From contig JBBMKC010216135.1 in assembly GCA_037834085.1 (NCBI GenBank), positions 1 to 34,537 on the forward strand: a DNA stretch of 34,537 bases. The letters are read 5' to 3'. Origin of the DNA: Bipalium vagum (lineage: Eukaryota). Below are positions 4,359 to 34,537 of this stretch, one piece after another. Each line of letters starts with the position of its first letter. Position 1 is the first letter of the stretch. The notes beneath the pieces were generated by a model. It was not told the DNA's origin and searched no databases. It saw only the letters and a list, made by a program, of their open reading frames with translations. A program made the translations under genes and the position numbers.

Positions 4359-7300
4359 ATGACGACGTTGACTCAGAGTAAAAAGGTAAGTTAATCAAAT
4401 AACAAGGAATTTCAGTTGCAAATTGAAATGGAACACGTTTTCTGATACATTTCCACAGTTCTTTTGATCGATTTTTGTCATTTTGAATATTTGTGTCGCG
4501 GATGCTGATCGCTCGTCGTTTCCTTTCTCAAATAAAATATTATTTCTGGTAAGCTTTCAAGGATAATTTGATCTTTTGTGCAGAAAGGGACTCATCCAAT
4601 GCTTGCTGCCTGTGAGAAGGGAGAACTTCAAACAGTAAAGGCTTTGGCAGTAGATCCGCTCAATTTGGAAATATGTGGAGAGGTGATTTACATGGTTACG
4701 TGTCTTGGTGACTTTAAGAAATGGTATACATAGGACGACAGAAGACCTATTCATCTGTGCTGCAAGAAAGGTTTCTTTTTTATTGCTAAGTTCTTGATCG
4801 AAAGAGGTTGTGACGTTGAACCATGCGATAAAGTTATTGGGTCTTTCTCAAACGATATCTTTTAATAATCGATTCAGAAATATATGAAACCCATTCACTT
4901 GGCTGCAAGGAATGGTCATGTTGATATCTTCGAGCTTTTACTTGACAAAGGGTGTAATATTGAGATTACGGATGAAGTTATTAATTTGTACTCTAAAAGC
5001 ACTTTAAAATTGAGTTCAGTTTGGTAGGAAACCCATTCACTTGGCTACAGAAAATGGTCACATTGATATTGTCAAGATTTTATCTGACAAGGGTGCTGAC
5101 ATGGAGGCCTGTGACTGGGTATTCGAATAATCCTCTAAATAATTCAAAATTTTTGAAATAGACTCAAAACAAACCCATCCATGTAGCGGCGGAGCACGGT
5201 CATTTTAACATTTTGAAATTGTTGGTTGAGAAGAGTTGCCACATTGAAGCTTGTGACCGGGTAAGTGATAAACTTAGTGAAATAATTTATAAGAATCGGT
5301 TTAGAATGGGAGGAGGCCCATTCACTCAGCTGCAGAGAAAGATGATTTTGATATTGTCGAATTCTTAATAGAGAATGATTGTGACATTGAGGCCTGTGAC
5401 TGGGTGGGTGTTTTATTTATTGCCCATAAATGAGCTTTTAAAAAATATTAAGGAAAATAGGAGACCCATTCACTCAGCGGCAGAAAAAGGTCATTATAAC
5501 ATTGTAAAATTTCTCATTGAGAAGGGTTGCGACATTGATGCTCGTGACAAAGTTATTGATTTATTGTGATGTGAATAATTTTTGAAAATAAATTCAGAAT
5601 AAAAAGAGACCTATTCACTTAGCTGAAGAAAACAATCATATTAACATTGTGCAGTTCTTGATCGAAAAGGGTTGTGATCTTGAAGCTTGTGATTGGGTTA
5701 TTAATTTCATCTGAGCAAATATTGATCTATAATATGAAATTTAGGAAAAGAAAAGACCTATTCATTTGGCAGTAGAAGAAGGTAATGTTGATGTTATCAA
5801 ACTATTGTTTGAAAAGGGCTGTGACCTTGAGGCTTGTGATGAAGTTATTGATTTCATTAAAAATGGATTCTTAAGCTTGAATTTAGGGGAGAAAAAGACC
5901 AATTCATTTAGCTGAAGAAAATAATTATGTTAAGATCACCAAATTTTTAATAGAGAATGGATGCGACATTGAAGCTTGTGACAGGGTTATTAATTTCGTC
6001 TCAACAAATATTCCTTTAAAGTATGAAATTCAGGAAAAGAAAAGACCTATTCACTTGGCAGTAGTAAAAGGTCATATTGATGTTGTGAAGCTATTGTTTG
6101 AAAAGGGTTCAGACCTTGAGGCTAGTGGTGAAGTTATTGATTTCCTTTAAAATGGATTCTTAAGCTTGAATTTAGGAGAGAAAAAGACCAATTCATTTAG
6201 CTGAAGAAAATAATCATGTTAAGATTACCGAATTTTTAGTAGAGAGTGGATGCGACCTCGAAGCTTGTGACAGGGTTATTCATTTCGTCTCAACAAATAT
6301 TGTTTTATAATAGGACATTTAGAAGATGAAAAGACCTATTCATTTAGCAGTAGAAAGAGGTCATCTGACTGTTTTCAACCTTTTGATTGAAAGGGGTTGT
6401 AACATTGAGGCTTGTGATGAAGTTGTAAATTTTTTGTCGATAATTCACTTTAAAATTGAATTCAGAGTAATAGGAGACCTATTCACATGGCAGCAAAAGA
6501 GGGCCAACTTGATATTGTCAAGGTTTTGCTTGACATGGGTTGTGACATTGAGGCTTGTGACAAAGTTATTAGTTTGTTTTCAATCATTAATTTTGAGAAT
6601 GAGTTCAGACAAATAGGAGACCTATTCACTTAGCCGCAGAAACAGGTCATCCGGATGTCTTCAAATTCTTGTTTGAGCGGAGCTATTATACTGAAAGTTT
6701 TGACGAGGTTTTGATTTGATCGTAGTAAATGATCATTTGAACTTTATTCAGAATAGAGACAAAATAATTCACTTGGTCGCAGCAAATGGTCATCTTGATA
6801 TTGTTCAGTTTTTATTTGAGAAGGGTCATGATATTGAGGCTTGTGACAAAGTTATTGATTTTGCCTTAATAAATCATTTTAAATGGGATTCAGAATAAAA
6901 GGAGGCCAGTTCACATGGCAGCAGAAGGACATCTTAAAGTGATTAAGTTTTTATTGGACAAAGGTTGTGACATTGAGGCTTGTGACTCGGTTATTGATTT
7001 TGTTCGCAAGAAATAATGTTTAAAATTGAATTTAGAAAAATAGAAGACCGATTCACTTGGCTGCATCCACTTCTCGTCTTGATATTGTCAAATTTTTGTT
7101 TGAGAAAGGTTGTGACATTGAGGCTTGTGACTGGGATTTTGATATATTGATTTGTTCCCAAGAAATAATTTTTAAAATTGTATTAAGGATAATAGAAGAC
7201 CTATTCACCACGCTGTATCAAGATTTGGTCTTGATATTGTCAAATTTTTGTTTGAAAAGGGCTGTGACATCGATGCCCGTGACAACGTATTTGATTTGTT

Positions 7301-10300
7301 ATCAATAATCAATTTTTAAATATGAATTTAGTTTGGTAGGCGACCCATTCATTTTGCTGCGAAAAATGGGCATATTGACATTTTGAAGTTTTTAATTGAA
7401 GTCGGTAGTGACATAGAAGCTTGTGATTGGGTGATTGATTTGTTCTCAACGTATGATTATTAGCCGTTTCATTTAGACTAACTCGAAACCCATTCACTTG
7501 GCTGCGAGAAAAGGTCATCTTAATATTGTGAAATTTCTTTTTGAGAGGGGTTGTGATTGTGAAGCCCGTAACGAAGTTATTGATTTATTCTCAATGAAAT
7601 ATTTTTAAAGTGAGCTCAGAAAAACAAGAGACCTATTCACTTGGCTGAGGAAAATCGTCATCTTGATGTTGTCAAGTTCTTGTTTGAAAGGACCTCTAAA
7701 ATTGGAGACTGTGACTGGGTCTTTCAATTCTTCCTATTAAATAATGTTTAGAAATAATTTCAGAGAACGACACCAATTTACATCGGTTCAGAAGAAGATC
7801 ATGTAGATGATTTGAAGCGCTTATTTGACGGGGGATGTGATATAGGTGCTTGTGATGAAGTTAATGGTGTATTTTTTATTAGCAAATTGTAAAAGTAAGT
7901 TCAGAATGGTCGGAGACCCATTCACTTGGCTGCAGAAAGTGGCCATCTGGGTGCTGTGGAGTTCTTGTTTGAGAATGGTTGTGACATTGATGCTCACGAT
8001 AAAGTTTTCCATTTGTTTTTTCAAGAAATAATTTCTGTTTAAAATGAACTCAGATTGGAAGGAGTCCCTTTCACTTAGCCGCACAAAATGGCCACTTGGA
8101 TGTTGTGAAGTTCTTGTTTGATCACTTGTGTGACTTTGACGTCTGTGACAAAGTTATTCTCTTTTCTCTATGAAAATTTTATTCAAAATGTAATCAGAAA
8201 AATAGAAGACCCGTTCACTTAGCTGCAGCAAAAGGTCACGATGATGTTTTAAAGTTCTTGGTAGAGAAGGGATGTGACATTGTGGCTTGCGAAAAAGTTA
8301 TTATTTTATTCTCTAAATGGTATAATATTATGTTGGAACAAAAATAATGACCGTTTTCCAAAAATTGTTTCCGTATCAATAATTTTAGAATACATTTATA
8401 TTGGTAACTCTATTTCTAAGGCGCGTTCTCTGCTTAATAAAAAGGCGGTTAATTTTTTAAATGCACCAATTTATTTATCCATCTTAGAAGTTTTTACAAC
8501 TCCGATGGTTTTCTTACACAAATTCTAACCTGTTCATTATGGTGCAAAGCGACAAGAAACGTAATAAGACATTAATTGACAAAATGTTTCTGAAAAATTT
8601 AAGGAAAATGGTAGTAGACTTCAGTCAGCTAATGATGATTAGTTGAAAACAATGATCGAAGTAGACTCACTATAAGTTTCGAAACACCAAAGTTCATCAT
8701 ACATGCGATATTTGAACAAAGTTTTCAAGGTTAAGATGGACCAATTGAACGAAAATCATAGGTTACTGCCGTTATGATATCTATTCCAGATATCTTTTGC
8801 TCAACAGAAACGCATCGTTTCCTGATCGTATCATTACGTTTAATGGAAATGGTTGTTGTGGGATATTGTGTAATGACTTCTGGATAATGGTTGGATCATG
8901 AAATGTGTTAAGATCATTAATGTCTAAAGGCATGTCTAAATATTGTAAATAGATGTAATGCACAAAAATCTTCTGCGACAATAAGTAGCGTTAGTTAACA
9001 AAAATGTCCTCTATTACTTCATGATAACGCTCGACCTCTCAAAGAAAACATTACTTGACAAAAATTTTATAACTATGGGTTATACCCTTCAACCCCCTCA
9101 CAAATTTAAATATTCAAGAAGTTGGGATGATTTATGCATCAGAAACAGTTGAAAAATGAAGGGTATGTGCAACACTCCTTATTGAAACTTTTCGCTATTA
9201 GAATCCCGTGTTTCTAAGGAATTGGTATAATTATGGTCATTTCACGTTGGAAGCCGTCTATTCCTTCCATTGGGTGATACTTTGATTAATAAAGCTCTGT
9301 TTGAACTGAGTTTTTGAATTTGAAAATATTAAAAAAAAAATAAAAAACGGTCACTTTATTTGCGCCCACCCACTTACCAATTATAATTTTAAAACTAAAT
9401 TCAGTCTGGAAGGAGTCCCGTTCATTTATCTGCTCAAAATGGACATTTGGATGTTGTGAAATTCTTATTTGATCATGGATGTGATATAGAGACATGTGGC
9501 GAAGTTGTTGATTTATTCTCAATTATTGATTTTTCACAAAATGGTTCAGAATGGTCGGAGACCCATCCACTTGGCTGCGGAAAAAGGTCATCTTCATATT
9601 GTCAATTTTTTGTTTGAGAAGGGTTGTGACATTGATGTCCATGATGAAGTTATTGATTTGGTCTCACAAAATAATTTTTGAATTGTGATTTCAGTATGAC
9701 TGGACACCAATCAAGTTGGCTGTGGAAAACGGTCATTTGGATGTTGTCAGGTTTTTATTTGGCAGGGAATGTGACATTGGAGGAGGAGGTAGAAAGGTAT
9801 TTTCTTTCTCAGTAAATAATTTCTTAAAGGTAATAAAGTACAATTGGAGACCCATTCACTCAGCTGCAAGAAAAGGTTATCTAAATATTGTCCAGTTCTT
9901 AATAGAGAATGGTTGCGATATTGAAGTCTGTGCGTTGGTTCGTTATTGATTCTGAATGGATGATTTTTTAAAATCAATTTCAGTTTAATAGAAAACCTAT
10001 TCATTTTGCTGCACAAAGTGGTCATATTAATATAGTGAAGCTTCTGTTTGACAAGGGTTGTGATGCTGAGGCTCGCGATAAAGTTATTGATTTGATCTCG
10101 ATGAGCAAATTTTAAAAAAATTTCAGTTTGGTAAAAAACCCATCCATCTGGCTACAGAAAACGGTCATCTTGATATTGTCAAGTTTTTGTTTGAGAGTGG
10201 TTGTGATTTTGATGATTGTGACAAAGTGATTAATTGATTTTCAATAATAATTTTTAAAAATTCATTCAGAATAGCATCCGGCCCATTCACATTGCTGCTG

Positions 10301-13300
10301 AAAAAGGTCATCTTAATATTGTCACGTTCTTCGATGAAAAGGGTTGTGACATCAAATCTTTTGACAAAGTGATTGGTTTATTGTAAATAATTTGTTTTCA
10401 ACATGAATGCAGTGGGGAAGGAGACCCATCAGTTTGGCTGCAGAAAACGGTCATATTGATATTGTCAAGTTTCTTTTCAACAAGAGTTCTGATAACGAAG
10501 TTTGTGACAAGGTTACTCGGCTTGCTCTGAAAATATATTCTTTAAATGTCGAAAATAGTTTTATTCTCATCCCATTCACTTAGCAGCAGAAAATGGTCAC
10601 CTTAATGCTGTCAAGTTCTTGATTGAGAAAGGCTGTAACATGGAGGCTTGTGATTTGGTTATTTATTTATTTGCACTAAATAATTTATAAAAAAGAAATT
10701 CAGTTCAATAAGACATCAATTCACTTAGCAGCAGAAAAAGGTTATCTAAATGTTAACGAGTTCTTGGTTGACAAGGGGTGTGACATGGAGGCTCGTGATT
10801 CGGTTATTGATTTATTGGCTCTAAATAGTTTATAAAAAAGAAATTCAGGATAATAAGAGACCAATTCACTTAGCAGTCGAAAATAATCATCTTGGTGTTG
10901 TTGAGTTCTTGATTGATAAGGGCTGTGACATGGAGGCTTGTGACAAAGTTGATTAATGTCAATCAAATAAAGTATAAAATGTATGTAGGATAACTGTCGA
11001 CCTATTTATTTGGCTGTGAAGGGAGGTCATGTTGACATAGTCAAGGTCTTATTGAGCAAAAATATTGATATTGATTATGCTGTGCAAGTAACGATTTATT
11101 TCATTTGAATAACAATAATAATAATACATGTATTTAGGGTAACTGGAATCTTGTTAATATTGCTAGCCTTAATGGTCACGGCGCTGTAGTTAAATGTTTA
11201 CTAGAACATGGTTGCAAGTGTGACGCCCTTGACGAGGTATTATTTCGCTCAAAATTTCAAGTTCAATTAAAATTCTTCAGTGGTGAAACTAATGTTCCTA
11301 TTTGAATAATAGTCTTTTCTCCTTTTAGCACTGCGAATTAAGACTAATAATAATGAATGTTGGTGAGTAATGGGGTTGATCGAAGCTAGTTCAACTAATG
11401 AGACCTATAAAATCAATACTAGCAAAAGACCAAGGATGAAACCAATGAATTAAAAGTTACTATTTTTAGATTGTTAGAGTTCTTGAAGTATGGAGAGGCT
11501 GCATTAATTGAGGTCTAAAACTAAACTAAGCAGCAACGTTGGCTGTACTTGTAATAAAGGTGCAGTAACAGGTCATGTAATCACATATCCGATATAGGTT
11601 TTCGCATGCTTAGAAGTGGTATTTGTTTAAATAAACTCTGAGAAAGCGCGAAAAATGAATATGTCATAATTACATTTCAGAAATGAACTGTCTTTCTTAC
11701 GCGACAATTAGTACGAGGGGACGGACATCGAATGTTGGAGTAAATATATTCTGAAGAGGTTCGTGGGTCTTCAAAGTGCAAATTTTGGCTTATCTGATTT
11801 GAGTGATTAGGAGGGATAAGGTCAGCCATAAAGTGTGGCTGATGCTCTAAATTGGATGCTCACTTGGATTCATTCCAAAGAAAAATCGATTGATAGCTGA
11901 CCGGTTTTTTTAACAGAGCTGGAATGTTCTGCAAATTAATTAAAAGCACGAGGTCCAAGAATGAAACACAAACATTATGTTCGATGGAATACTGCTGCCT
12001 ATGTAGATATAGGGTGTCATTAGTCCTGTGTCCACTCTATGGTGCTGAGGTGATCCTTCGTCTGGTTTGCGGTATTGTCAGGGTTTTGTCGGGGCCTTTT
12101 CTAATATTATTTTTCAGTCTCTTTTATAAATGAATGAAACTAACTATTTTCAGGAAGACCGGAAAGCATTGGTGAATTCTTCTGACGACGGTTTCATTCG
12201 AGAACTTTTGTTCAAGTTAAATTGTAAGGGTTAATGCTTTTCTCGTTTTACAGAGTGATTCCTTAATACATGTCGCATTGTGCATTATGAATTATATAAT
12301 TATGTCACTGACCGAATGAAAGTATTTCATACATTATCGCGCATCATACCTTTAACCAATTATCAATTATCACTTATTCTAACTGATATTATGGGGCACA
12401 AGTTGAACAGGAAATTAAATGATCTCAGGAAAAGCGCTCAAGAAAGACGATAAATGTCGTCACGGTGAGAGGTTTGAAAATAGCGGTATGAACATTTCAT
12501 CAACCTTGTCTTTCTCACACTGATCAGTCCAAGACAGTATAGATAGATTCTTTGACAGCGAAGAAAGGCGGGACGGTTGTTTTCCTTCGAAGACGGAAAG
12601 AAAATGGAATGATTTGGATCATCGCTCCACGGGGTTCTACAGTGACAAGAGAGAGTATATTGACAAGTCTGTTAAGAGAGAATTTTTTTAATTATGCCTG
12701 TAAAGTGCATTCAGTTAAACCAGGCATGTCCAACCTACTTCTCGCGGGCCGCATTGTGGCCCACTTATTGTGTAAATGCGGCCCAGTATCGACTCATTTT
12801 GGACCTATTTACGCATTATCATATATTCTGGTAATTTTAGGGCCTATTTAAATATTTAGGTTTGCAATGCGACCCATTAAATCAAAAGGTTGGACATCCC
12901 TGATTTAAACAAATCCAATCCACATTCATCCGTGCGAGTATGTATTAAGGAAAATCTCTGCACTGTGACTTTTATTATTTTCGTTACAGTTTCTTTAATG
13001 TTTGTTCCCCTTTTATTTTATACCACTTTTCAAATGTCATTTGAAGTCTTTGACTTCTTCTTTCTCAGCCTCGGTCCAGGCAGCGTTTGAATCAAAAGAG
13101 AAGGTTGGTCAAGGAGGTTATGGAGTGGTTTACAAAAATAAAGACTTTGATGAAAACTTCGTGGTGAAGAAAATACAACACAAACGGATTCCTAATTACG
13201 AGAAAAGTATTGAACTAAACTTGGGCAAATACAGGAAGCTTCTCTACCACGAGAACATCATTGAGTTCATTGGGGAGAAATGGGGCGAAAAGAGGTCTTT

Positions 13301-14829
13301 TGTATTGATGAGATATGCTTCAGGGGTGAGAATCTTAAATTTTATTATCATTATTATTTCCCATAATAATCAAAAAAATAATAATAAAAAAGTTGAAATA
13401 TTATTTTAAAATGATGAAATTGGAATGATAATTTCTCTTACCATTATTTAGGGGTCTCTGGATAAGTTATTGGAATATGGAGCACTGGACCACCGGACGA
13501 TTATGTTGTATAACAAAGGAATTCTTGAAGGATTGAAATTTCTTCATGCCAATGGAATCATCCACCGGGATATCAAACGTAATTGATTTGGTAAATATAC
13601 TCAAGACCAAAGACCGTTCAGAGAGGCAAAGACGATAACATTTTGGTTTGTCTCTTGACCAATTGGAACATGTTAAAAAATTTCATGAACTTTCCAAACC
13701 AAACCCTTTCAGAGAACTGTAATATCTTCCGGTTCTCCTTGACACTTTCGACAGTAGAACAAAGTTGAAGAGAAACACAAACCAAAATGTTCGCCTTTCT
13801 CAATGGTGCTCATTTGGTCGAGTCAATTCCAATTTTCGACAGAGAAATAATTTGTTTTAATTTTCAAAGCTGAAAATATTTTGCTCGATGATCGCGACAG
13901 GGTGAAGTTGTGCGACTTTGGACTTGGTCGAGTATTTACAGGTCCTGGTGCCTGTTCGGAAGATAATAACGATGAACTCTCTGAGCCAGGACCTTCCAAT
14001 GCTATGGTTTCCTATAAAACGTCCACTGAGGGTACTCATGCTTATCTTGCTCCAGAGGTGATCGTTGACGCCTGTTATTACTTTTCTTCGGACATTTGGT
14101 CGTTCGGGGCCACAAATGTAGCAATGTTGACAGGTCGGTTTACAGATCCATCCTTTCATTACTTAAAGTCATGTTTAACTATCTCTATTATTAGTGCTTG
14201 CGCTGCTGGGACCATTTGTGGAATCTGGCACTCGATAAAGGAACCAAACCAAAAATACATTCATTTTTCTGAAATAATCTCCTTTAAAGGCAACATACTT
14301 TTGTCCCATGGAACCACCAGCTCTCGAAGAGTCTTTCCATTATGCAGTTGGCACTTTACGTACCAATACCAGCTTGACTTTTACTTTTCCTCGTCCAAGT
14401 GACGAAAAGCGCTGAAGTCGTCATTTCATTTTAAAGGTTTGGAACAAAAAGAAGTGCAAAGGAGATAAGTCTGGTTGATGCGTGTTCAGTGTCATTAATT
14501 ATGCCGCTCGGGTCCACAATAATGGAATCCCACACATTATTATTATCTTTATTATTATTATTATTATTATTTGCATCTTCTATGAAAAGTATCTTTAATT
14601 AAATTTTTTTGTTTGGTTAGGGAAACGTCCTTATTATGATGAGCATGGGGAACCTGCCCTTAAGATCGGAACTAAAAAGAAAATCGACTTTATGCCTTTG
14701 AAACCAATGTCAAAGAACTTGAAGCATCTTTTAGAGAAAGCTCTTACTCCGGACCCAAAACTTCGAAGTTCTGCCGATGAGCTCCTTCGATGGATACGTT
14801 CAAAGGAGCCATATTTTGATGAGTTCTGA
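4359..14829 (+). CDS. Copy A: predicted multi-exon ankyrin-repeat protein kinase (~39 ANK repeats plus C-terminal Ser/Thr kinase, roughly 1600 aa if all exons are joined)
   Basis: Candidate first exon ATG 4359-4385 (MTTLTQSKK|GTAAG) is tentative. The last ANK exon ends in phase 0 at 11236. It can join the phase-0 linker exon 12154-12223 directly, or via small exons 11329-11362 and 11478-11512, and so reach the kinase in frame. The fusion is inferred from phase compatibility and the same arrangement in copy B. The nearer acceptor at 11280 gives TGG TGA (ANK-only product). Confidence 0.6.
4584..11236 (+). CDS. Copy A ankyrin array: 39 phase-0 exons, one ANK repeat each
   Basis: Exon starts: 4584, 4734, 4878, 5020, 5162, 5305, 5453, 5598, 5745, 5887, 6034, 6176, 6323, 6466, 6609, 6752, 6894 (96 nt), 7036, 7188, 7332, 7477, 7620, 7764 (96 nt), 7905, 8054, 8198, [1.1-kb intron with mariner], 9405, 9550, 9695 (102 nt), 9839, 9984, 10127, 10270, 10413, 10559, 10704, 10849, 10989, 11138. 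All others are 99 nt. All are stop-free and AG/GT-bounded, except a GA donor at 7135. Consensus xxxRPIHLAAExGHLDIVKFLFEKGCDIEACDx is a canonical ankyrin repeat. Confidence 0.95.
8331..9374 (+). mobile_element. Decayed mariner element in the intron between ANK exons 26 and 27
   Basis: TA-flanked imperfect TIRs: TA|TGTTGGAACAAAAATAATGACCGTTTT and AAAACGGTCACTTTATTTGCGCCCACCCACT|TA. Transposase remnants F(P)DRIITFN (~8818) and LLHDNARP (9014-9037). Confidence 0.85.
12154..14829 (+). CDS. Copy A linker plus Ser/Thr protein kinase domain (STE/MAP3K-like appearance)
   Basis: Exons 12154-12223, 13069-13325, 13452-13578, 13870-14133 and 14621-14829 splice in frame. Motifs: [90 protein letters not shown], ending ...YFDEF-TGA. 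All catalytic motifs are intact. The subfamily call is by eye only. Confidence 0.93.
12721..12902. mobile_element. Non-autonomous hAT-type MITE (182 bp) in a copy A intron
   Basis: TIRs CAGGCATGTCCAACCT / AGGTTGGACATCCCTG (15/16 match). 8-bp TSD AGTTAAAC / ATTTAAAC (7/8). Absent from the equivalent intron of copy B. Confidence 0.88.
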
Positions 14830-15451
14830 CAATTTTCAAAAACCTTTGTCATTTCAGCTGATTTAAACAAGACAATAATAAAAAATATTATTATTTTCAT
14901 TTAATATTAAAAGTCATTGATCCAAGAGGTTGGGTTGCGACTCTCATAACAATAATAATGATAATAATAATAATGAAAGATATTTATAAGCACAGACTTT
15001 TTCCTTTCAGTGCTGAAAGGATTTAATTATTTAAGTGTTTAGTTCAACGTTTAATGCGAGATCTAATCTGGAAAATATAAATGCTAACACTATTAATATA
15101 GGTTAGATATGGGCTTATCAACTTCAAAGGTCGTGTAACAAATGAGTGTTCTAAGATCCGAACTAATTGTAACTAAAATCAACTGAGATAACACGGTTTT
15201 ATTACAAAAATATATTTTCAAAACAATGCAACTCTTTCTGATAATAATATCTATCAGTTAATTAATTAATGTTTTCTTGGTTTTATGATAACCGAAGAAG
15301 CCCTCGTGTCAAAAAAACGTATTCTGGCTAGAGTGAAACAGAATCGATTTTCTAAGAGAACAAAACCCGAAATAATAAAAAGAACTTATGCAGAGTATTT
15401 GCTCTGAATGCGTGGATCGTTATTTAATTATTTAAATTTTTCTCAAAAGAG

Positions 15452-15455
<4 letters not shown>

Positions 15456-15525
<70 letters not shown>
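15456..15525. repeat. Compound (AT)n(GT)n microsatellite
   Basis: Seen directly. Confidence 0.97.
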
Positions 15526-21638: not shown

Positions 21639-23549
21639 CAGCGATTATGTTTAAACAGAACAATTTTAGTTTAAGATTTTTAATTTTTAACTTCGAATAA
21701 TTTTGAGTTTGTTTATGTGTCAACTTTGTTTAGTTTTCGTTTACTTTTCAATTATTAATTTATAATATTCAATTTGTTTTTCTTTACTTCTTAAATTTAT
21801 GATTTACTTTACTTTTTAGATCTATTTTAGAATTATCAATAATAAATAAAGAAACCCTGACTCTTAAAGAGAAATTGAAATTTTATGTCAGTTGGATGAG
21901 AGTGTTAAGCAAGCCGAGCTAGCAAGAAAGCACAAGGTCGATAATAATTTAAAGTATTTGTTTATATAATTGATTTTTGGTAAATAAACAGTTTTTAAAA
22001 AGTAGTTTAGTGTTTTGCATTTAATGAATAATTTGGGGGAAGAGACCAATCAACCTATCAAATACAAAATAACAGAGAAAGAATTTGTGATGCTATTTCA
22101 ACTCGACCATTAAACACCAAGAAAGTTTAAAATACACCCTTTGAAAGCATTGATTCCGAATTACTGAACTGGTTTAAACTTCAAAAAATGAACAATGTTT
22201 CAATTTCTTCACAAATACTTCTTGAAAAAGCAGCTCAATTGGCTGAAAGATTGGAGATTAAAAATTTCAACTGTAACGTAAGTTGGATTCAACGTTTTAG
22301 AAAACTCTATTCAGTTACATATGGTATTGTCTCTGGTGAATCTAAAGTAATGGATCAGTTGGTTGTTCAAAATTGATTAATTGATCAATGGTTTCAACGT
22401 CAATTGGGATATGAAAATCGAAATATCTTTAATGGGGATGAGACTGGTCTTTTCTTTAAAATGTTACATAATAAAACTATGAGACTTAAAGGAGACAAAT
22501 GCAGTGGTCGTGAAATATCAAAAAAAAAAAAGATTAACTGTTTTCCTTTGTGCTAGTATTACTGGTTAAAGGATGCCTCCTATCATTATTGGAAAATATT
22601 TAAAACCGAAATGTTTCAAAAATAAAAGCGTGGAACATCTACATCATCATGCAAATACAAATGCTGGGATGACATCCGAAATTTTCAAAACGGAATTAAT
22701 GAAATGGGATACAAGGCTAAGAAATGGTAAAAGAAAATTTTTACTGTTCGTTGATAATTGCTCAGCGCATGCGGATATCAATAATATTTTAACAAACAAA
22801 CAATGGTATTCTTGTCATCAAATACAACAAGTGTGTTGCAACCTATGGAGATGCAGAAATAATGAAAAATTCTAAAGTGAATTACCGAAAAAGTTTGGTT
22901 GTCCCTTTAATAAACTGTTCTGACAAAATCCACGAATACGATATCAATATTTTTGATGCCATTCAGATGATATCGGATGGTTGGGAAAGAATATCCTCAG
23001 GAACAATTTATAATTGCTTTCATCATTCAATTTTATCGCAACAAGTAAACATTCCCGAGACTTGTAAAGATGTAAATGCTTTAATTGAGAACGAAATTAA
23101 AGACGAATATACTTTTTTAGCCGAATTTTTTGAATCAAGACGAGATTTAGAAGATTATTTAGTCATTGATAATGGTTTGGAAGCAATGGAGATTGAAGAA
23201 GAAACTGAGAATATTCATGGTTCATCCGAACCATTGGATAAAACGAATGAAATTGAGATTGGTGATTTTTTAGAGGCTTTAACAATAGTCAAGGAATACT
23301 ATTTTACAGAAAATTACAATGAAGTTATTTTTATCAACTTGCTTAACGTTGAGAATGATCTCAGAGATAAATTTTTCAAGAAAAAAAGTTAAGGAATATT
23401 TCAACTTGAAATAAAATTTAATAATAATGACATCGTATTTTATTGGTGATGTTTTATTTTATTGATTTTATCGTTTAAACAGAATTTTTCGCTTAAACAG
23501 AATAAACTTTTGTACTCCCGATTTTGTTCTGTTTAAGCAAGTCATACTG
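21639..23549 (+). mobile_element. Tigger/pogo DNA transposon with pseudogenised transposase
   Basis: TA|CAGCGATTATGTTTAAACAGAA ... TTCTGTTTAAGCAAGTCATACTG|TA, with subterminal CG(T/C)TTAAACAGAA copies at ~23472 and ~23490. CENP-B HTH and DDE_1 motifs: IDSELLNWF, ILLEKAAQLA, SWIQRFRK, IFNGDETGLFF, PIIIGK..KPKCFK, AGMTSEIF, LLFVDNCSAH, NTTSVLQP. Broken by stops and frameshifts. Confidence 0.93.
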
Positions 23550-24483: not shown

Positions 24484-26995
24484 CTAATCAAAGAATGACT
24501 CCATAGAATATATCCATTGAAGGAGCTCGTTGGCGGAACTTCGACGTCTTGGGTCCGGATTAAGAGCTTTCCTTAAAAGACGCTTCATGTTCTTTGACAT
24601 CGGTTTCAAAGGCATGAAGTCGATTTTCTTTTCAACTCCAATTTTAAGGACAGGATCACCAGGCTCATAGTAATAAGGACGTTTTCCTAACCAAACAAAT
24701 GAATTTAATGAAAGAGACTTTTTCGAAGAAGATGGAAATAATAATACTAATGATATTGTGTGGAATTCCATTATCGTGGATCAACACTACACGTTTTCAA
24801 AAATGTATGTTTTTCGCACCTGTCCTTTGACACACGACCAACATGGCACTAACCGTCAAATTTAGACATCCACCAGTAAAAGGTATAAACTCAGTCGAAA
24901 CCATTTTCCATGATCATCTGAATGTATAGAGGCTCTGCAGTTGTTGGACCATTCACAATAAGATATTATGCGACAAAGTGAGTCCTGTAAAATGTTGCCA
25001 AAATGTTCTTGAAATTAAACAAAGGTGATTTAATTTACAACGGCGTTACTTGTCAAGAAACAGGGATGTATTCTTACGACTCCGAAACTAAGCAGCAATA
25101 AATTGGTTGGATATTTAAAAGTGAATCGGTCCCAAAGTGCTCAAAAGTTACAGAGAACAGTCGGTTTCATGGCACAAAAGTGTGTTACCTCTAAAGAAGA
25201 ATATTTTGGAAAAATGAATGTATTTTTGGTTTGGCTCCTTTTTCCATTGCCAGATTCCACAAGTCCTCCCAGAAGTGCATGCGCTATTAATAGAGTTAGT
25301 TAAACATGACTTTGAGTAATGAAAGAATGGATCTGTGAACCAACCTGTCAACATTGCCACATTTGTGGCCCCGAACGACCAAATGTCCGAAGAAAAGTAA
25401 TAACAGGCGTCAACGATCACCTCTGGAGGAAGGTACGCTACAGTACCATGCGTTGACGTTTTATAGGGATCAACATCACTCGAGAGTCCTGATCCAGATA
25501 TTTCATCGTTATTATCTTCCGAATAGGCACCATGACCTGTAAATACTCGACCGAGTCCAAAGTCGCACAACTTGACCCTGTCGCGATTATCGAGCAGAAT
25601 ATTTTCAGCTTTGAAAATTAAAACAAATTATTTCTCTGTCGAAAATTGGAATTGACTCGACCAAATGAGCACCATTGAGAAAGGCAGACTTTGGTTTGTC
25701 TTTTCTTCACCTCTGTTCTACTGTCGAAAGTGTCACGGAGAACCCGGGAAATATTAAAGTTAATGAAATGTTTGAACATGTTCGAATTGGTGAAGGGACA
25801 AACCAAAATGTTATCGTCTCCGCCTCTCTCAACGATCTTTGGTCTTGAGTACATATACAAATCAATTACGTTTGATATCCCGGTGGATGATTCCATTGGA
25901 ATGAAGAAATCTCAATCCTTCAAGAATTCCTTTGTCAAAATCAATAATCATCCGGTGGTCCATGGCAACATTTTCTAATAACTGATCCAGAGACCCCTGA
26001 AATTATGGTAAGACAAATTATCACCCCCATTCCGAAATGGGGAATTTTTTAATTGTTTACTTTAAAATATTTAAAAAGATGAATGAAATTTTTAAGACAA
26101 ACTTATTTTTAAAATTTATTAAAAAAGAAATAACCAGGTCTGAGAAAATTTGTTTAAAAATTATTTGTATTGACCAATTAATAAATCCATTAAAAAAATG
26201 ACATGTAATTCTGAGCATAAACCGATTGATATTAACAAAAACGATGGAAATAATAATAAATAATAATGATAAAAAAATTTAAGGTTCTCACCCCTGGAGC
26301 ATATCTCATCAATACATAGGACCTCTTTTCGTCCCACTTCTCCCCAATGAACTCAATGATGTTCTCGTGGTAGAGACGCCTGCCGAATATGCTCAAGTTT
26401 AGTTCAACACTTTTCTCGTAATTTGAAATCCGTTTGTGTCTTATTTTCTTCACCACAAAGTTTTGATCAAAGTCTTCATTCTTGTAAACCACTCCATAAC
26501 CGCCTTGACCAACCTTCTCTTTCGATGAAAACGCCGCCTGGACCGAGGCTGAGAAATAAGAAGTCAACAACGTTAAATGACATTTAAAAATTGATATAAA
26601 ATAAAAGGGGAACAAACATTAAAGAAACTGTCATGAAAACAATAAAATTCACAGTGCAGAGGTTTTCCTTAATACATACTCTGACAGTGACGGTGTTTAT
26701 CGTCTATTTTGAAAGCTTTTCCTGAGATCAGTTGATTTCCTGTAAATCTTGTACCGCAGAATATCAACCAGAATAAGTGATAATTGATAATTGGTAAAGG
26801 TATGATGCGCGATAATGTATGAAATATTTTCATTCGGTCAGTAACATAATTATATAATTCATAATGCACAATACGACATGTATTAAGGAATCACTCTGCA
26901 AAATGACAAAAGTATTGATCCTTACAATTTAACTTGAACAAAAATGCTCGAATGATACCATCGTCCGAAGAATTCACCAATGCTTTCCGGTCTTC
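24484..26995 (-). CDS. Copy B linker plus Ser/Thr kinase domain
   Basis: Minus-strand exons 26995-26926, 26548-26292, 25996-25870, 25608-25345 and 24686-24484 splice in frame. Motifs: GQGGYG, HRDIKPEN, DFG, GTVAYLPPE, SDIWSFG. Ends FFD-TAG, two codons before the TGA shared with copy A. Several differences from copy A are synonymous. Confidence 0.9.
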
Positions 26996-30194: not shown

Positions 30195-33100
30195 CTCGTC
30201 AAGGGCGTCACACTTGCAACCATGTTCCAGTAAACATTTAACTACAGCACAGTGACCATTAAGGCTGGCAATATCAACAAGATTCCAGTTTCCCTGATAA
30301 TATTTATTATTATTTTCAAATGAAATAAATCGTTACTTGCACAGCATAATCAATATCAATATTTTTGCTCAATAAAAACTTGACAATGCCAACATGACCT
30401 CGATTTACAGCCATATGAATAGGTCGACAATTATCCTACACACATTTTATACTATATATAATTGACATTAATCAATCAATAACTTCGTCACAAGCCTCCA
30501 TGTCACAACCCTTATCAAACAAGAACTCAACAACATGAAGATGATTATTTTCGACTGCTAAGTGAATTGGTCTCTTATTGTCCTGAATTTCTTTTTAAAA
30601 AAACTATTGTGTAAATAAATCAATAACCGAATCACGAGTCTCCATGTCACACCCCTTTCTGACCAAGAACTCGATAACATCCAGATGACCGTTTTTTGCT
30701 GCGAACTGAATTGGTCTATTATTTTTCTAAATTTACTTTTTAAAAACTATTTATTGCAAAAAAATCAATAACAAAATCACGAGCTTCCAAGTCACAGGAC
30801 TTTTCGAACAAAAACTCCATTACATCCAGATGACCGTTTTCAGCTGCAAAGTGCATAGGTCTCCTGTTTAACTGAATTTTTTGTTAAAGCGTATTTACTG
30901 CAAATAAATCAATTACTGAATCACGAGCCTCCATGTCACAGCCCTTCCCGACCAAGAACTCGATAACATTCAGATGACCGTTTCCTGCTGCTAAGTGAAT
31001 GGGGTGAGAATTAAACTATTTTCGACATTTAAAGAATATATTTTCAGAGTAAACCGGATAACCTTGTCACAAACCTCGTTATCAGAACTCTTGTCGAATA
31101 GAAACTTGACAACATCAAGATGACCTTTTTCTGCAGCCAAACCGATGGGTCTCTTTCCCCACTGCGTTCATGTTTAAAACAAATTATTTACAATACACCA
31201 ATCACTTTTTCATAAGATTTGATGTCATAACCTTTTACATCGAAGAACGTGACAATATCAAGATGACCTTCTTCAGCAGCAATGTGAATGGGTCGGACTC
31301 CATTCTGAATGAATTTTTAGAAATATTTTTTAAAAATCAATCAATCACTTTGTCACAAGCATCAAGTTCACAACCACTCTCAAACAAAAACTTGACAATA
31401 TTAAGATGACCGTTTTGTGTAGCCACATGGACGGGTTTTTGACCAAACTAAAAACTTTTTTAAACTTGCTCACCCAGAGCAAATCAATAACTTGATTACG
31501 AGCCTCAGCATCACAACCCTTGTCAAACAGAAGCTTCACAATATCAATATGACCACTTTTTGCAGCAAAATGAATAGGTTTTCTTTTCAACTGAAATTGA
31601 TTTTACAAATTATCGTTTGAGAATCAATCACGCACCCAGTCACAGGCCTCAATATCGCAACCATTCTCTATTAAGAACTGGACAATATTTAGATAACCTT
31701 TTATTGCAGCTGAGTGAATGGGTCTCCAATTGTACTTTATTACCTTTAAGAAATTATTTACTGAAAAAGAAAATACCTTTCCACCTCCCCCTCCAATGTC
31801 ACATCCGCTGCCAAATAAAAACCTGACAACATCCAAATGACCGTTTTCCACAGCTACTTTGATGGGTGTCCGGTCTTGCTGAAATAAAAATTCAAAATAT
31901 TTTTTGTGAGAAAAAATCAATAACCTGATCATGGACATCAATGTCACAAACCTTTTCAAACAAGAAATTAATAATATGAAGATGACCTTTTTCCGCAGCC
32001 AAGTGGATGGGTCTTTGACTATTCTGAACCATTTTTGAAAAATCAATAATTGAGAATAAATCAACAACTTTGTCACATGTCTCTATATCACACCCGTGAT
32101 CAATTAAGAATTTCACAACATCCAAATATCCATTTTGAGCAGATAAATGAACGGGACTCCTTCCAGACTGAACTTAGTTTTAAAATTATTTTCATGAAAA
32201 AGAAAGATTAACATGGTCACAAGCAGCCATGTCACAGTTTTTCTCAGTCAAGAACTTAATAACATCCAGTTGACCCTTTTCAGCAGCAATGTGAATGGGT
32301 CGTACTCCATTCTGAATGAATTTTTAGAAAATTTTATAGAAAATCAATCAATCACTCTGTCACGAGCACTAAGGTCACAACCACATTCAAACAAAAAATT
32401 GACAATATCAAGATGACCTTTTTCTGTAGCCAAATGGACGGGTCTTTTACCGAACTGAATAATTTTTAAAATTTACTCATTCAGATCAAATCAATAACCA
32501 GATCACGAGCCTCAGAATTACAACCATTGTCAAAAAGAAACCTTATAATACCAAGATAACCTTTTTCTGTAGCCAAATGGACGGGTCTTTTACCAAGCTG
32601 AATAATTTTTAAAATTTTTATCACCCAGATCAAATCAATAACTTCATCACGAGCCTCAGCATCACAACCCTTGTCAAACAGAAGCTTCACAATATCAATA
32701 TGACCACTTTTTGCAGCAAAGTGAATCGGTTTGCTTTCCGACTGAAATTAACTTTACAAATTATGAATTTAGAAAAATCACTCACCCAGTCACAGGCCTC
32801 AATGTTGCAACCATTCTCTATTAAGAACTTGACAATATTTAGGTAACCTTTTTCTGCAGCTGAGTGAATGGGTCTCAAATTGTATTATTATTTATCTTTA
32901 TTATCTTTAAGAAATTTTTTACTGAGAAAGAAATTACCTTCCTACCTCCTCCTTCAATGTCACATCCCTTACCATATAAAAACCTAACAACATCCAAATG
33001 ACCGTTTTCCACAGCTAACTCGATGGGTGTCCAGTCATACTGAAATCACATTAAAAAATTATTTTGTGAGAACAAATCAATAACTTCATCATGGGCATCA

Positions 33101-33328
33101 ATAACACAAGCCTTCTCAATCAAGAAATTGACAATATCAAGATGACCTTTTTCCGCCGCCAAGTGGATGGGTCTCCGACCATTCTGAACCGTTTTGTGTA
33201 AAATCAATAATTGAGAATAAATCAATAACTTCGTCACATGTCTCTATATCACAGCCGTGATCAAATAAGATTTTCACAACTTCCAAATGACCATTTTCAG
33301 CAGATAAATGAAAGGGACTCCTTCCAGA
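30195..33328 (-). CDS. Copy B ankyrin array (visible part): 22 phase-0 single-repeat exons
   Basis: Exon 5' ends on the minus strand: 33328, 33183, 33039 (102 nt), 32884 (acceptor displaced), 32741, 32597, 32454, 32311, 32167, 32023, 31878 (102 nt), 31734, 31590, 31447, 31304, 31161, 31015, 30871, 30726, 30582, 30435, 30293. The rest are 99 nt and stop-free where translated. No start codon or upstream exons lie within the window. Confidence 0.93.
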
Positions 33329-34005: not shown

Positions 34006-34537
34006 CACTCCTTTAATTAAGTCTGTTCACCCCACTTAATTGAATAATATACATAGATTTTAATCTATTTTTTATGTTAATATAATGAAATCGATGTTTA
34101 AATGCATCAATATTAAATTAAAAGTGGTACAATTTCAAAAACAGAATTTTATAATGGTAACATTTTTAACGAAAGAAGAAAGAATTTCAATTGTTGCACT
34201 TTCAAAATCAGTTAAAAATTGGACCGAAGTAATATTAATGATGAAGAGGGAATTTAATTGCCACGTGACCAAGCGTGCTTGTCAAAAAATTGTTCAAAAA
34301 TTTAATAGTCGTGGTAACGTGATTGATGATCAAAGAATTGGTCGACCCAGTTTTCTATCAGAGATAAAAGGCTGATTAAGAGACTATCTATACGGTCCTG
34401 ACTATCAAGTTTAACCGTGGTTGCCCTTGAATTTTATAGACAAACAGGAAGGAACATTATTTATGTATGGGTAGGTAAAGTTTTAAATGATTTTGGTTTA
34501 AGACGATATGTTGCAACACCAAAACCTTTTCTCAATT
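34006..34537 (+). mobile_element. 5' end of a Tc1-like transposon with degenerate transposase N-terminus
   Basis: TA|CACTCCTTTAATTAAGTCTGTTCACCCC is a TIR-like start. ORF MVTFLTKEERISIVAL...QKIVQKFNSRGNVIDDQRIGRPSFLS matches the paired-like HTH plus GRPR-like motif. Downstream GLRRYVATPKPFLS resembles the Tc1 basic region. Confidence 0.8.

Follow-up and report, generated by a model that had tools for sequence, protein, structure and literature searches.

A 39-repeat ankyrin array and a predicted active kinase in one gene of a flatworm multigene family

The window, a stretch of 34,537 nt from Bipalium vagum (contig JBBMKC010216135.1), holds two related genes that lie tail-to-tail, gene A on the plus strand and gene B on the minus strand. 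Each contains an array of ankyrin (ANK) repeat exons, a short linker exon and four kinase exons (K1 to K4), arranged as follows.

4584..8296, plus strand: ANK exons 1-26 of gene A, all in phase 0 and each encoding one repeat
5598..6421, plus strand: tandem duplication of a two-exon unit (gene A exons 8-13)
7036..7134, plus strand: gene A ANK exon 18, open in frame, donor GA, not GT
8297..9404, plus strand: sole long intron of the gene A array, 1108 nt, with a homologous stretch upstream of the first exon of gene B
9405..11236, plus strand: ANK exons 27-39 of gene A, of which the last two, 38 and the C-cap exon 39, are conserved family-wide
12154..12223, plus strand: gene A linker exon, 70 nt, starting in phase 0 and ending in phase 1, with AG and GTAAG splice sites and no Met
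13069-13325, plus strand: gene A kinase exon K1, with the Gly-rich loop, catalytic Lys and helix C
13452-13578, plus strand: gene A kinase exon K2, with HRDIK at its end
13870-14133, plus strand: gene A kinase exon K3, with ENILL, DFG, APE and DIWSFG, and an activation loop that carries an insert of ~20 residues and a TST motif
14621-14829, plus strand: gene A kinase exon K4, including the stop codon with which gene A ends at 14829
24484..26548, minus strand: gene B kinase exons (K1 26548-26292, K2 25996-25870, K3 25608-25345, K4 24686-24484)
26926..26995, minus strand: gene B linker exon
30195..33328, minus strand: 22 gene B ANK exons, the 5' part running off the window
32786..32884, minus strand: gene B exon 4, open in frame, in which an insertion of ~11 nt shifts the AG acceptor out of register

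The 39 phase-0 ANK exons of gene A, which occupy positions 4584-11236 of the plus strand, are nearly uniform in length (99 bp in 36 instances, 96 bp in exons 17 and 23, and 102 bp in exon 29) and are separated by introns of 41-53 nt, the 1108-nt intron being the one exception. All 39 exons are preceded by an AG acceptor and are open in frame 0, and 38 of them are followed by a GT donor. The exception is exon 18, which has a GA there and is probably either defective or skipped. Translation is predicted to start from the ATG at 4599, within exon 1, and this exon together with its in-frame Met is kept in five of six paralogs; the array closes with the C-cap exon at 11138-11236. The predicted protein would comprise ~1,589 residues, or 1,556 without exon 18.

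By the standard of the Pfam Ank family (PF00023), gene A encodes an ankyrin repeat protein of 33-residue repeats. Eight of the ten exons tested passed the Pfam cut-off, with alignments that ran over positions 1-33 or 5-33 of the profile; the C-cap exon matched weakly and the N-cap exon had no match, and a profile made from the repeats recovered 39 of 39 ANK domains. The tandem duplication that spans exons 8-13 (period 289, 2.8 copies and 83% matches according to TRF) is recent, with 92% identity between exons 10 and 12 and 87% between exons 9 and 11.

The fusion of array and kinase assumed in the initial annotation is supported by comparison with the paralogs, which shows the ANK array, the linker and the kinase to be parts of a single predicted gene. 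The linker exon is present at 19 genomic sites, and at least 10 of the contigs concerned are also among the kinase-exon matches. In nine paralogs, whose K3 exons are only 48-83% identical to that of gene A, the linker keeps the same length, splice sites and phase and carries synonymous changes; a Ser codon is split across the linker/K1 junction (T/CC or T/CT). Furthermore, same-strand ANK arrays lie upstream in 9 of the 10 paralog loci with enough upstream sequence. The distance from the last ANK exon to the linker, 917 nt in gene A and 3.2 kb in gene B, would suit a different arrangement, in which an ANK-only gene is followed in fixed order by an adjacent kinase gene that starts at the linker exon. 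This arrangement is very improbable, however, as in A, B and most paralogs the linker is without a Met and keeps its acceptor, and its phases match both of its neighbours. Moreover, the C-cap exon is separated from the linker by 76 nt in one paralog (C9235) and by ~94 nt in another (C95230), in the form of a canonical GT..AG intron, and in these two a terminator and a promoter would not fit between array and linker.

The sole public sequencing run with this sequence yields contigs over 9400-15000 that cover introns and intergenic DNA identically; the run is therefore DNA, and is probably the origin of the assembly. Joints in these contigs were not read as alleles or isoforms, because they derive from paralogous contigs accepted at 90% likeness.

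On the 3' side of the gene A array, the only Pfam matches are to a kinase. The four kinase exons span positions 1-259 of the 263 of Pkinase (PF00069), and the linker and K1-K4, joined with a local script, form a single open frame of 927 nt with the Gly-rich loop GQGGYG, the lysine in VVKK, APE and DIWSFG. With the Gly-rich loop, Lys, HRD with its Asn, DFG and APE all intact, the product is predicted to be an active kinase, and the catalytic motifs are invariant in 11-17 paralogs. Exon, Pfam and motif checks thus confirm the central observation of the initial annotation, that 39 consecutive one-repeat, phase-0 exons precede a catalytically complete kinase. The kinase of gene B has the same splice phases, and its joined frame is open to the stop at 24486-24484. 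Profile searches gave ASK1, PAK1 and MST3 as the best matches of K2, and MEK1/2, STK25 and MST1/2 as those of K3, which would place the kinase nearest to the STE group (ASK1, PAK/MST and MEK types). The assignment is not firm, because it is built from exon-by-exon profiles and because K1 prefers Chk1, followed by MLK1, TAO3 and MAP4K3.

Sizing of the family genome-wide by its kinase exon, as had been suggested, gave 45 matches to K3, of which ~35 are full-length, and the genome would accordingly be estimated to hold about 35-45 such kinase loci. No close relative of the K3 exon was found with HMMER among 1.84 billion protein representatives. The best E-value was 2e-10, at 40-46% identity; the top matches were multi-kinase plant receptor-like kinases and other generic kinases, and the matches that aligned full-length came from Trichomonas, Lipomyces, Pythium or unnamed metagenome contigs. 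The ESM Atlas likewise returned generic kinase clusters only, and a search of the literature on planarian ANK kinases found nothing relevant and no description of the family. Among the paralogs, no coding sequence is conserved upstream of the first ANK exon. Because it is only this first exon that is conserved, the family is predicted to have no signal peptide or other N-terminal domain.

Repeat number in the countable arrays ranges from 7 to 39. Gene B has 22 repeats where gene A has 13, in agreement with the claim that a paralog differs in repeat number, and the difference is made up of an 8-exon block duplication and one additional exon: B1-B8 are the block duplicate, and B9-B22 are collinear with A27-A39 except for B18, which has no counterpart in A. 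Between distant paralogs, positional orthology is found for the terminal repeats and for none of the internal ones. These comparisons show that arrays change via tandem duplication and loss of exon-plus-intron units, and that, with exons uniformly in phase 0, these changes leave the reading frame intact. The claim that skipping or duplicating an exon causes no frameshift holds as a matter of arithmetic, as all lengths are multiples of 3 and all starts are in phase 0. Repeat number changes rapidly among paralogs, and the copy-number flux claimed at the outset is borne out. The homogenised scaffold that was claimed along with it is not found: repeats within gene A share 62% nucleotide identity, as against 81-94% for orthologous exons of A and B.

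In the comparison of A with B, the ANK exons give a dN/dS of 0.55 and the kinase exons one of 0.47, and the divergence of aligned introns is 0.11, showing that both parts are under purifying but relaxed selection. A broken splice site in one exon of each gene might suggest that the locus no longer functions and is a decaying relic of a family that has expanded, and so might a paralog (contig C214719, locus L021) in which K3 has an in-frame TAG and K1 and K2 were not detected. Such decay is highly unlikely, because gene A is open in all 39 ANK exons and in the five exons downstream, the ANK and kinase parts both give dN/dS values below 1, and the catalytic motifs are invariant among paralogs. 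Furthermore, a defective phase-0 exon can be skipped with the frame undamaged.

The reading that we favour, with a probability of roughly three in four, is that gene A belongs, as an intact member, to a lineage-specific flatworm family of cytoplasmic ANK-kinase proteins with a scaffold-type role. The ANK solenoid would serve as a long protein-binding and regulatory platform and, judging from how ANK arrays generally behave, would bring a partner or substrate within reach of the kinase. The kinase might be activated through its Ser/Thr-rich activation loop and, once activated, would feed into a MAPK-type cascade, with binding specificities that would differ from paralog to paralog.

Both ANK-plus-kinase proteins and ankyrin genes with one repeat per exon are already known. 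TNNI3K, like gene A, is a cytoplasmic protein with an ANK array N-terminal to an active protein kinase. It is encoded by a single-copy gene and has ~10 repeats, a TKL-group (MLK-like) kinase and a Ser-rich tail, whereas gene A has 39 repeats, belongs to a multigene family, and has K2 and K3 profiles that best match STE-group kinases; TNNI3K is also not among the 60 best-matching solved chains from the K1, K2 and K3 profile searches. ILK shares the order of N-terminal ANK repeats and kinase fold; it has ~5 repeats, and its kinase fold is that of a pseudokinase in which the catalytic residues are missing. Gene A is not an ILK, as HRD, DFG, the VVKK Lys and APE are intact and conserved in its family. 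RIPK4/ANKK1 and DAPK1 also combine a Ser/Thr kinase with ANK repeats, of which there are 8-11, and RIPK4 acts in immunity-linked signalling. In these proteins, however, the kinase comes first, and DAPK1 adds ROC-COR and a death domain. In gene A, gene B and nine paralogs the kinase exons are found 3' of the ANK exons, setting them apart from RIPK4/ANKK1, and neither ROC-COR nor a death domain was found in the regions examined.

Very long ANK solenoids are found in the vertebrate ankyrins ANK1-3, which have 24 repeats, largely encoded by one 99-bp exon each, and in the NOMPC channel, which has 29; the array of gene A is longer than either. The outputs differ as well, being ZU5-UPA-death domains in ankyrins, a TRP channel in NOMPC and a kinase in gene A, and neither ANK1-3 nor NOMPC forms a rapidly changing multigene family. 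Gene A is not a canonical ankyrin, as its repeats are followed by a linker, a kinase and a stop.

An immune or non-self recognition role for the ANK-kinase family, as proposed in the initial annotation, is a possible hypothesis. In its fuller form, the family would be an intracellular immune or non-self repertoire with diversifying ANK sensors and a kinase effector, to which combinatorial exon skipping or array-length polymorphism might add further diversity. The family is large and lineage-restricted, its arrays hold different numbers of repeats with no internal positional orthology in distant paralogs, two copies adjoin one another with a block duplication, and variation gathers at the binding face, all of which would fit such a repertoire. 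Entropy is 2.56 bits at the canonical binding-face positions and 1.49 elsewhere; the claim of a variable binding face therefore stands as an observation, but such variability is a general property of ANK repeats and no special sign. Positive selection at the binding face is not significant in a Nei-Gojobori count by position class (omega 0.64, or 0.91 with pooled dS, for which the 95% interval is 0.63-1.30), and the kinase has evolved about as fast as the ANK part, suggesting general relaxation, not sensor-specific diversification. On balance, a repertoire of this kind is unlikely.

Known receptor families provide a further comparison. In Ectocarpus, the LRR-ROCO genes and those of the NB-ARC-TPR type have one exon per repeat, variable repeat number, gene birth and loss, and a repeat order that is independent of paralogy, and they are reported to be under diversifying selection (PMC3341825). 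The family described here is like these candidate receptors in having one repeat per exon, a variable repeat number and gene birth and loss, and its repeat order may likewise depart from paralogy, as distant paralogs lack internal positional orthology. Unlike them, it has ANK in place of LRR or TPR repeats, with neither a ROC-COR nor an NB-ARC NTPase found, its genes A and B are collinear except where blocks have been duplicated, and diversifying selection is not detectable, omega not being above 1. Fungal NLRs with ANK, TPR or WD repeats are similar in having a repeat array as putative sensor and in changing its copy number.

In fungal NLRs this change occurs by unequal recombination, and the repeats are near-alike and located after a NACHT or NB-ARC domain. 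The repeats of gene A, by contrast, are not homogenised, and no NTPase was found. An NLR/STAND receptor is not indicated either, as neither NACHT, NB-ARC, TIR nor death domain was found and the upstream ORFs tested matched no Pfam family, although short exons could escape such a search. Of what might speak for an immune family, the fusion, the repeat flux and the binding-face variation are supported; homogenisation, positive selection and an immune-type domain were not detected. Slightly less likely again is the more specific version, that of a new class of germline-encoded intracellular recognition repertoire in flatworms, independent of NLRs, in which a variable ANK sensor would be wired directly to a MAPK-cascade kinase and frame-neutral skipping, duplication or length polymorphism would make isoforms or individuals more diverse. 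If a recognition system of this sort were true, planarians, which are studied for regeneration and wound responses, would gain a new kind of innate receptor.

What differs from known cases is a family of ~35-45 putative genes that combine arrays of 7 to 39 ANK repeats with a kinase that appears STE-like. The family is a clean natural case of repeat arrays that grow and shrink by frame-neutral exon units, and its arrays rank, to our knowledge, among the longest ANK arrays.

Comparative sequence analysis establishes gene A (plus strand, 4584-14829) as an intact predicted gene in which an array of ankyrin repeats (ANK) is fused to a kinase, with a tandem paralog, in a fast-changing multigene family. 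The array lies in AT-rich eukaryotic DNA (G+C of the window ~33%) and consists of 39 plus-strand exons at 4584-11236, of which 36 are 99 bp long, two 96 bp and one 102 bp. AG precedes all 39, frame 0 is open in each, and 38 have the donor GT, exon 18 (7036-7134) having GA. Introns within the array are 41-53 nt, with a single exception of 1108 nt (8297-9404), and Tandem Repeats Finder detects exon plus intron as a repeat with a period of 142-152 bp and, at 5603-6424, a pair of exons as a 289-bp unit. Positions 1-33 or 5-33 of the Pfam Ank profile take up the full span of the internal exons tested, and because these match end to end, the exon boundary is the repeat boundary; the first exon (N-cap) has no Pfam match and the last (C-cap) a weak one, while a profile built from the repeats of gene A finds 39 of 39. 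The open frames, acceptors and end-to-end alignments bear out the initial annotation, which had described 39 phase-0 exons of one repeat each. With the profile boundary at 33|1, every intron presumably falls at the beta-hairpin tip of the ANK structure.

The array is rich in cysteine (62 per 1,286 residues). Cys replaces the consensus Ala at repeat position 26 in 27 of the 36 33-residue repeats (4584-11236), and a second Cys occupies hairpin position 31 in 23 of the 36. Such a composition could conceivably make the array sensitive to redox state or electrophiles, or let it bind metal.

Downstream of the array lie a linker exon and four kinase exons (K1-K4).

Linker and kinase exons of gene A
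12154-12223, plus strand, linker exon, 70 nt, phase 0 start, phase 1 end
13069-13325, plus strand, K1, Pkinase PF00069 positions 1-80
13452-13578, plus strand, K2, Pkinase PF00069 positions 83-125
13870-14133, plus strand, K3, Pkinase PF00069 positions 127-192
14621-14829, plus strand, K4, Pkinase PF00069 positions 218-259

Joined together, the five exons give a single 927-nt open frame ending at 14829, the same end as in the initial annotation. This frame contains GQGGYG, the VVKK lysine, a stretch of 11 residues (not shown), APE and DIWSFG, and with the four PF00069 matches it agrees with the earlier description of a catalytically complete kinase. Some 20 additional residues are inserted in the activation loop, where a conserved T-S-T precedes G-T-x-x-Y-L-A-P-E. 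At the 5' end, the first ANK exon is the sole sequence conserved among paralogs, so the predicted protein begins with the array, without a signal peptide; an in-frame Met is found in five of six first exons, in gene A as the ATG at 4599. The predicted protein has 1,589 residues, or 1,556 without exon 18.

The evidence that array and kinase belong together is comparative, as the single public sequencing run with this sequence is DNA, its contigs covering the introns identically. Twelve paralog loci were fetched; upstream sequence was sufficient in ten, and nine of these have an ANK array upstream of the kinase on the same strand. The linker is kept at the same 70 nt in nine paralogs, in all with a polypyrimidine tract before the AG acceptor and with GTAA as donor, and the paralog linkers share the motif x-[DE]-R-K-x-L-...-F-K-[LIM]-N amid many synonymous differences. 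The codon split between linker and K1 is always Ser, formed by the last base T of the linker and CC or CT of K1. In contig C9235 one 76-nt GT..AG intron separates the C-cap exon from the linker, and in C95230 the distance is ~94 nt. The linker occurs at 19 places in the genome, and at least ten of those contigs are also among the K3 matches, including C254732, C233059, C95230, C9235, C186406, C112540, C239283, C175023 and C201740. Two separate genes would be the alternative, and a very improbable one: Met is absent from the linker in gene A and in its paralog gene B, so the linker cannot begin a separate protein. Together, these comparisons argue strongly that array, linker and kinase form one gene. 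Within the linker-to-K1 intron, the DNA-run contigs omit 162 nt and 196 nt (12434-12597, 12720-12917); this region looks G+C-rich and MITE-like, and the omissions may reflect insertions that differ among alleles or among paralogs.

Gene B lies on the minus strand, tail-to-tail with gene A. Its linker and kinase exons equal those of gene A in length and phase, and their joined frame is open. The different repeat number ascribed to it earlier is also found: 22 ANK exons lie at 33328-30195, the 5' part extending beyond the window end, with B9-B22 collinear with A27-A39 (81-94% nucleotide identity, one additional exon in B) and B1-B8 a block duplicate of B9-B15. In gene B exon 4 an insertion of ~11 nt puts the acceptor out of register, so that a faulty splice site affects one exon in A and one in B; such an exon could be skipped harmlessly owing to the phase-0 design. 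That the locus is decaying is a reading with very little probability. A pogo/Tigger-type transposase (Tc5 HTH domain, DDE_1; 22188-23392, plus strand) survives as frameshifted remnants in the 9.6-kb spacer between the two genes, and the long intron that precedes gene B exon 1 contains an antisense stretch (~34100-34537, minus-strand reading) that by eye resembles the N-terminal part of a mariner/Tc1 transposase. Simple repeats occur at the contig start ((TAT)n, 1-71) and downstream of gene A ((AT)22 then (TG)13, 15456-15525).

A genome-wide search, proposed earlier as a means of sizing the family, gave 45 matches to K3 in the 440-Mb assembly, ~35 of them full-length at 48-83% identity and 44 stop-free. 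The family is real and well defined, a variant of two kinds already known, kinases with ANK repeats and arrays with one exon per repeat. Distant paralogs have 7, 10, 12, 18, 21, 21, 26 and 28 repeats, counts that include arrays ending at contig ends; only the N-cap, penultimate repeat and C-cap are positional orthologs of those in gene A, and the internal repeats are without collinear counterpart. Arrays turn over as exon-intron units are duplicated in tandem and lost. The homogenised scaffold of the initial annotation did not hold up: the repeats of gene A average 62% nucleotide identity and recent copies are limited to exons 9/11 (87%) and 10/12 (92%), so ongoing conversion does not homogenise the scaffold, and every repeat has retained its identity since the A-B split. 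Among the paralogs, L012 (G000:C254968) has HGD in place of HRD in the catalytic loop (961-1086), making it a non-RD kinase, and L021 (G000:C214719) keeps 21 ANK repeats and has an in-frame TAG in K3; K1, K2 and linker were not detected there, and it is probably a pseudogene or rearranged copy.

Selection on genes A and B is purifying but relaxed, with dS 0.164, dN 0.090 and a ratio of 0.55 for ANK exons, 0.236, 0.111 and 0.47 for kinase exons, and a divergence of 0.11 for matched introns. The six positions randomised in designed ANK proteins, which we take to fall at 33, 1, 3, 11, 12 and 31 of the exon, have an entropy of 2.56 bits versus 1.49 bits elsewhere and, between recent pairs, differ 9.0 times per position versus 4.3, in keeping with the variable binding face proposed earlier. 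Positive selection on this face was not demonstrated, omega being 0.64, or 0.91 with pooled dS (bootstrap interval 0.63-1.30, small sample), versus 0.44-0.47 at framework positions; the pattern fits relaxed or neutral change. The ANK solenoid may provide an STE-type kinase with a platform for binding and regulation, with paralogs differing in their binding targets. The initial annotation went further and read the family as an immune or non-self recognition system. The layout does recall the one-repeat-per-exon candidate receptors of Ectocarpus (PMC3341825), but an NTPase or death-fold module is missing and diversifying selection is not demonstrable, and we consider this reading unlikely.

Database searches with the kinase were made one exon at a time, and its class was sought by comparing profiles of paralog exons with solved structures. 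The best matches were ASK1 (MAP3K5), PAK1 and MST3 for K2, MEK1/2, STK25 and MST1/2 for K3, and Chk1, then MLK1, TAO3 and MAP4K3, for K1; TNNI3K, ILK and RIPK4 were absent among them. These exon-by-exon profiles suggest a kinase that resembles the STE group and cannot be assigned to any named family. With HMMER, K3 found nothing above 40-46% identity among 1.84 billion representatives, the closest being generic kinases of plant, protist and fungal origin. A collection of 15 billion proteins, in which assemblies made from public sequencing runs are also represented, has none above ~50% identity to K3.

The same assembly contains an intact COX1 (G000:C253947:276-1577), which shows the conserved motifs only if AAA is read as Asn, AGR as Ser and TGA as Trp; judged by these motifs, its code is the flatworm/echinoderm mitochondrial code. 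Further COX1 fragments lie on ~20 other contigs, and many, with mixed TGA, TAG and TAA stops, resemble mitochondrial sequence copied into the nuclear genome.
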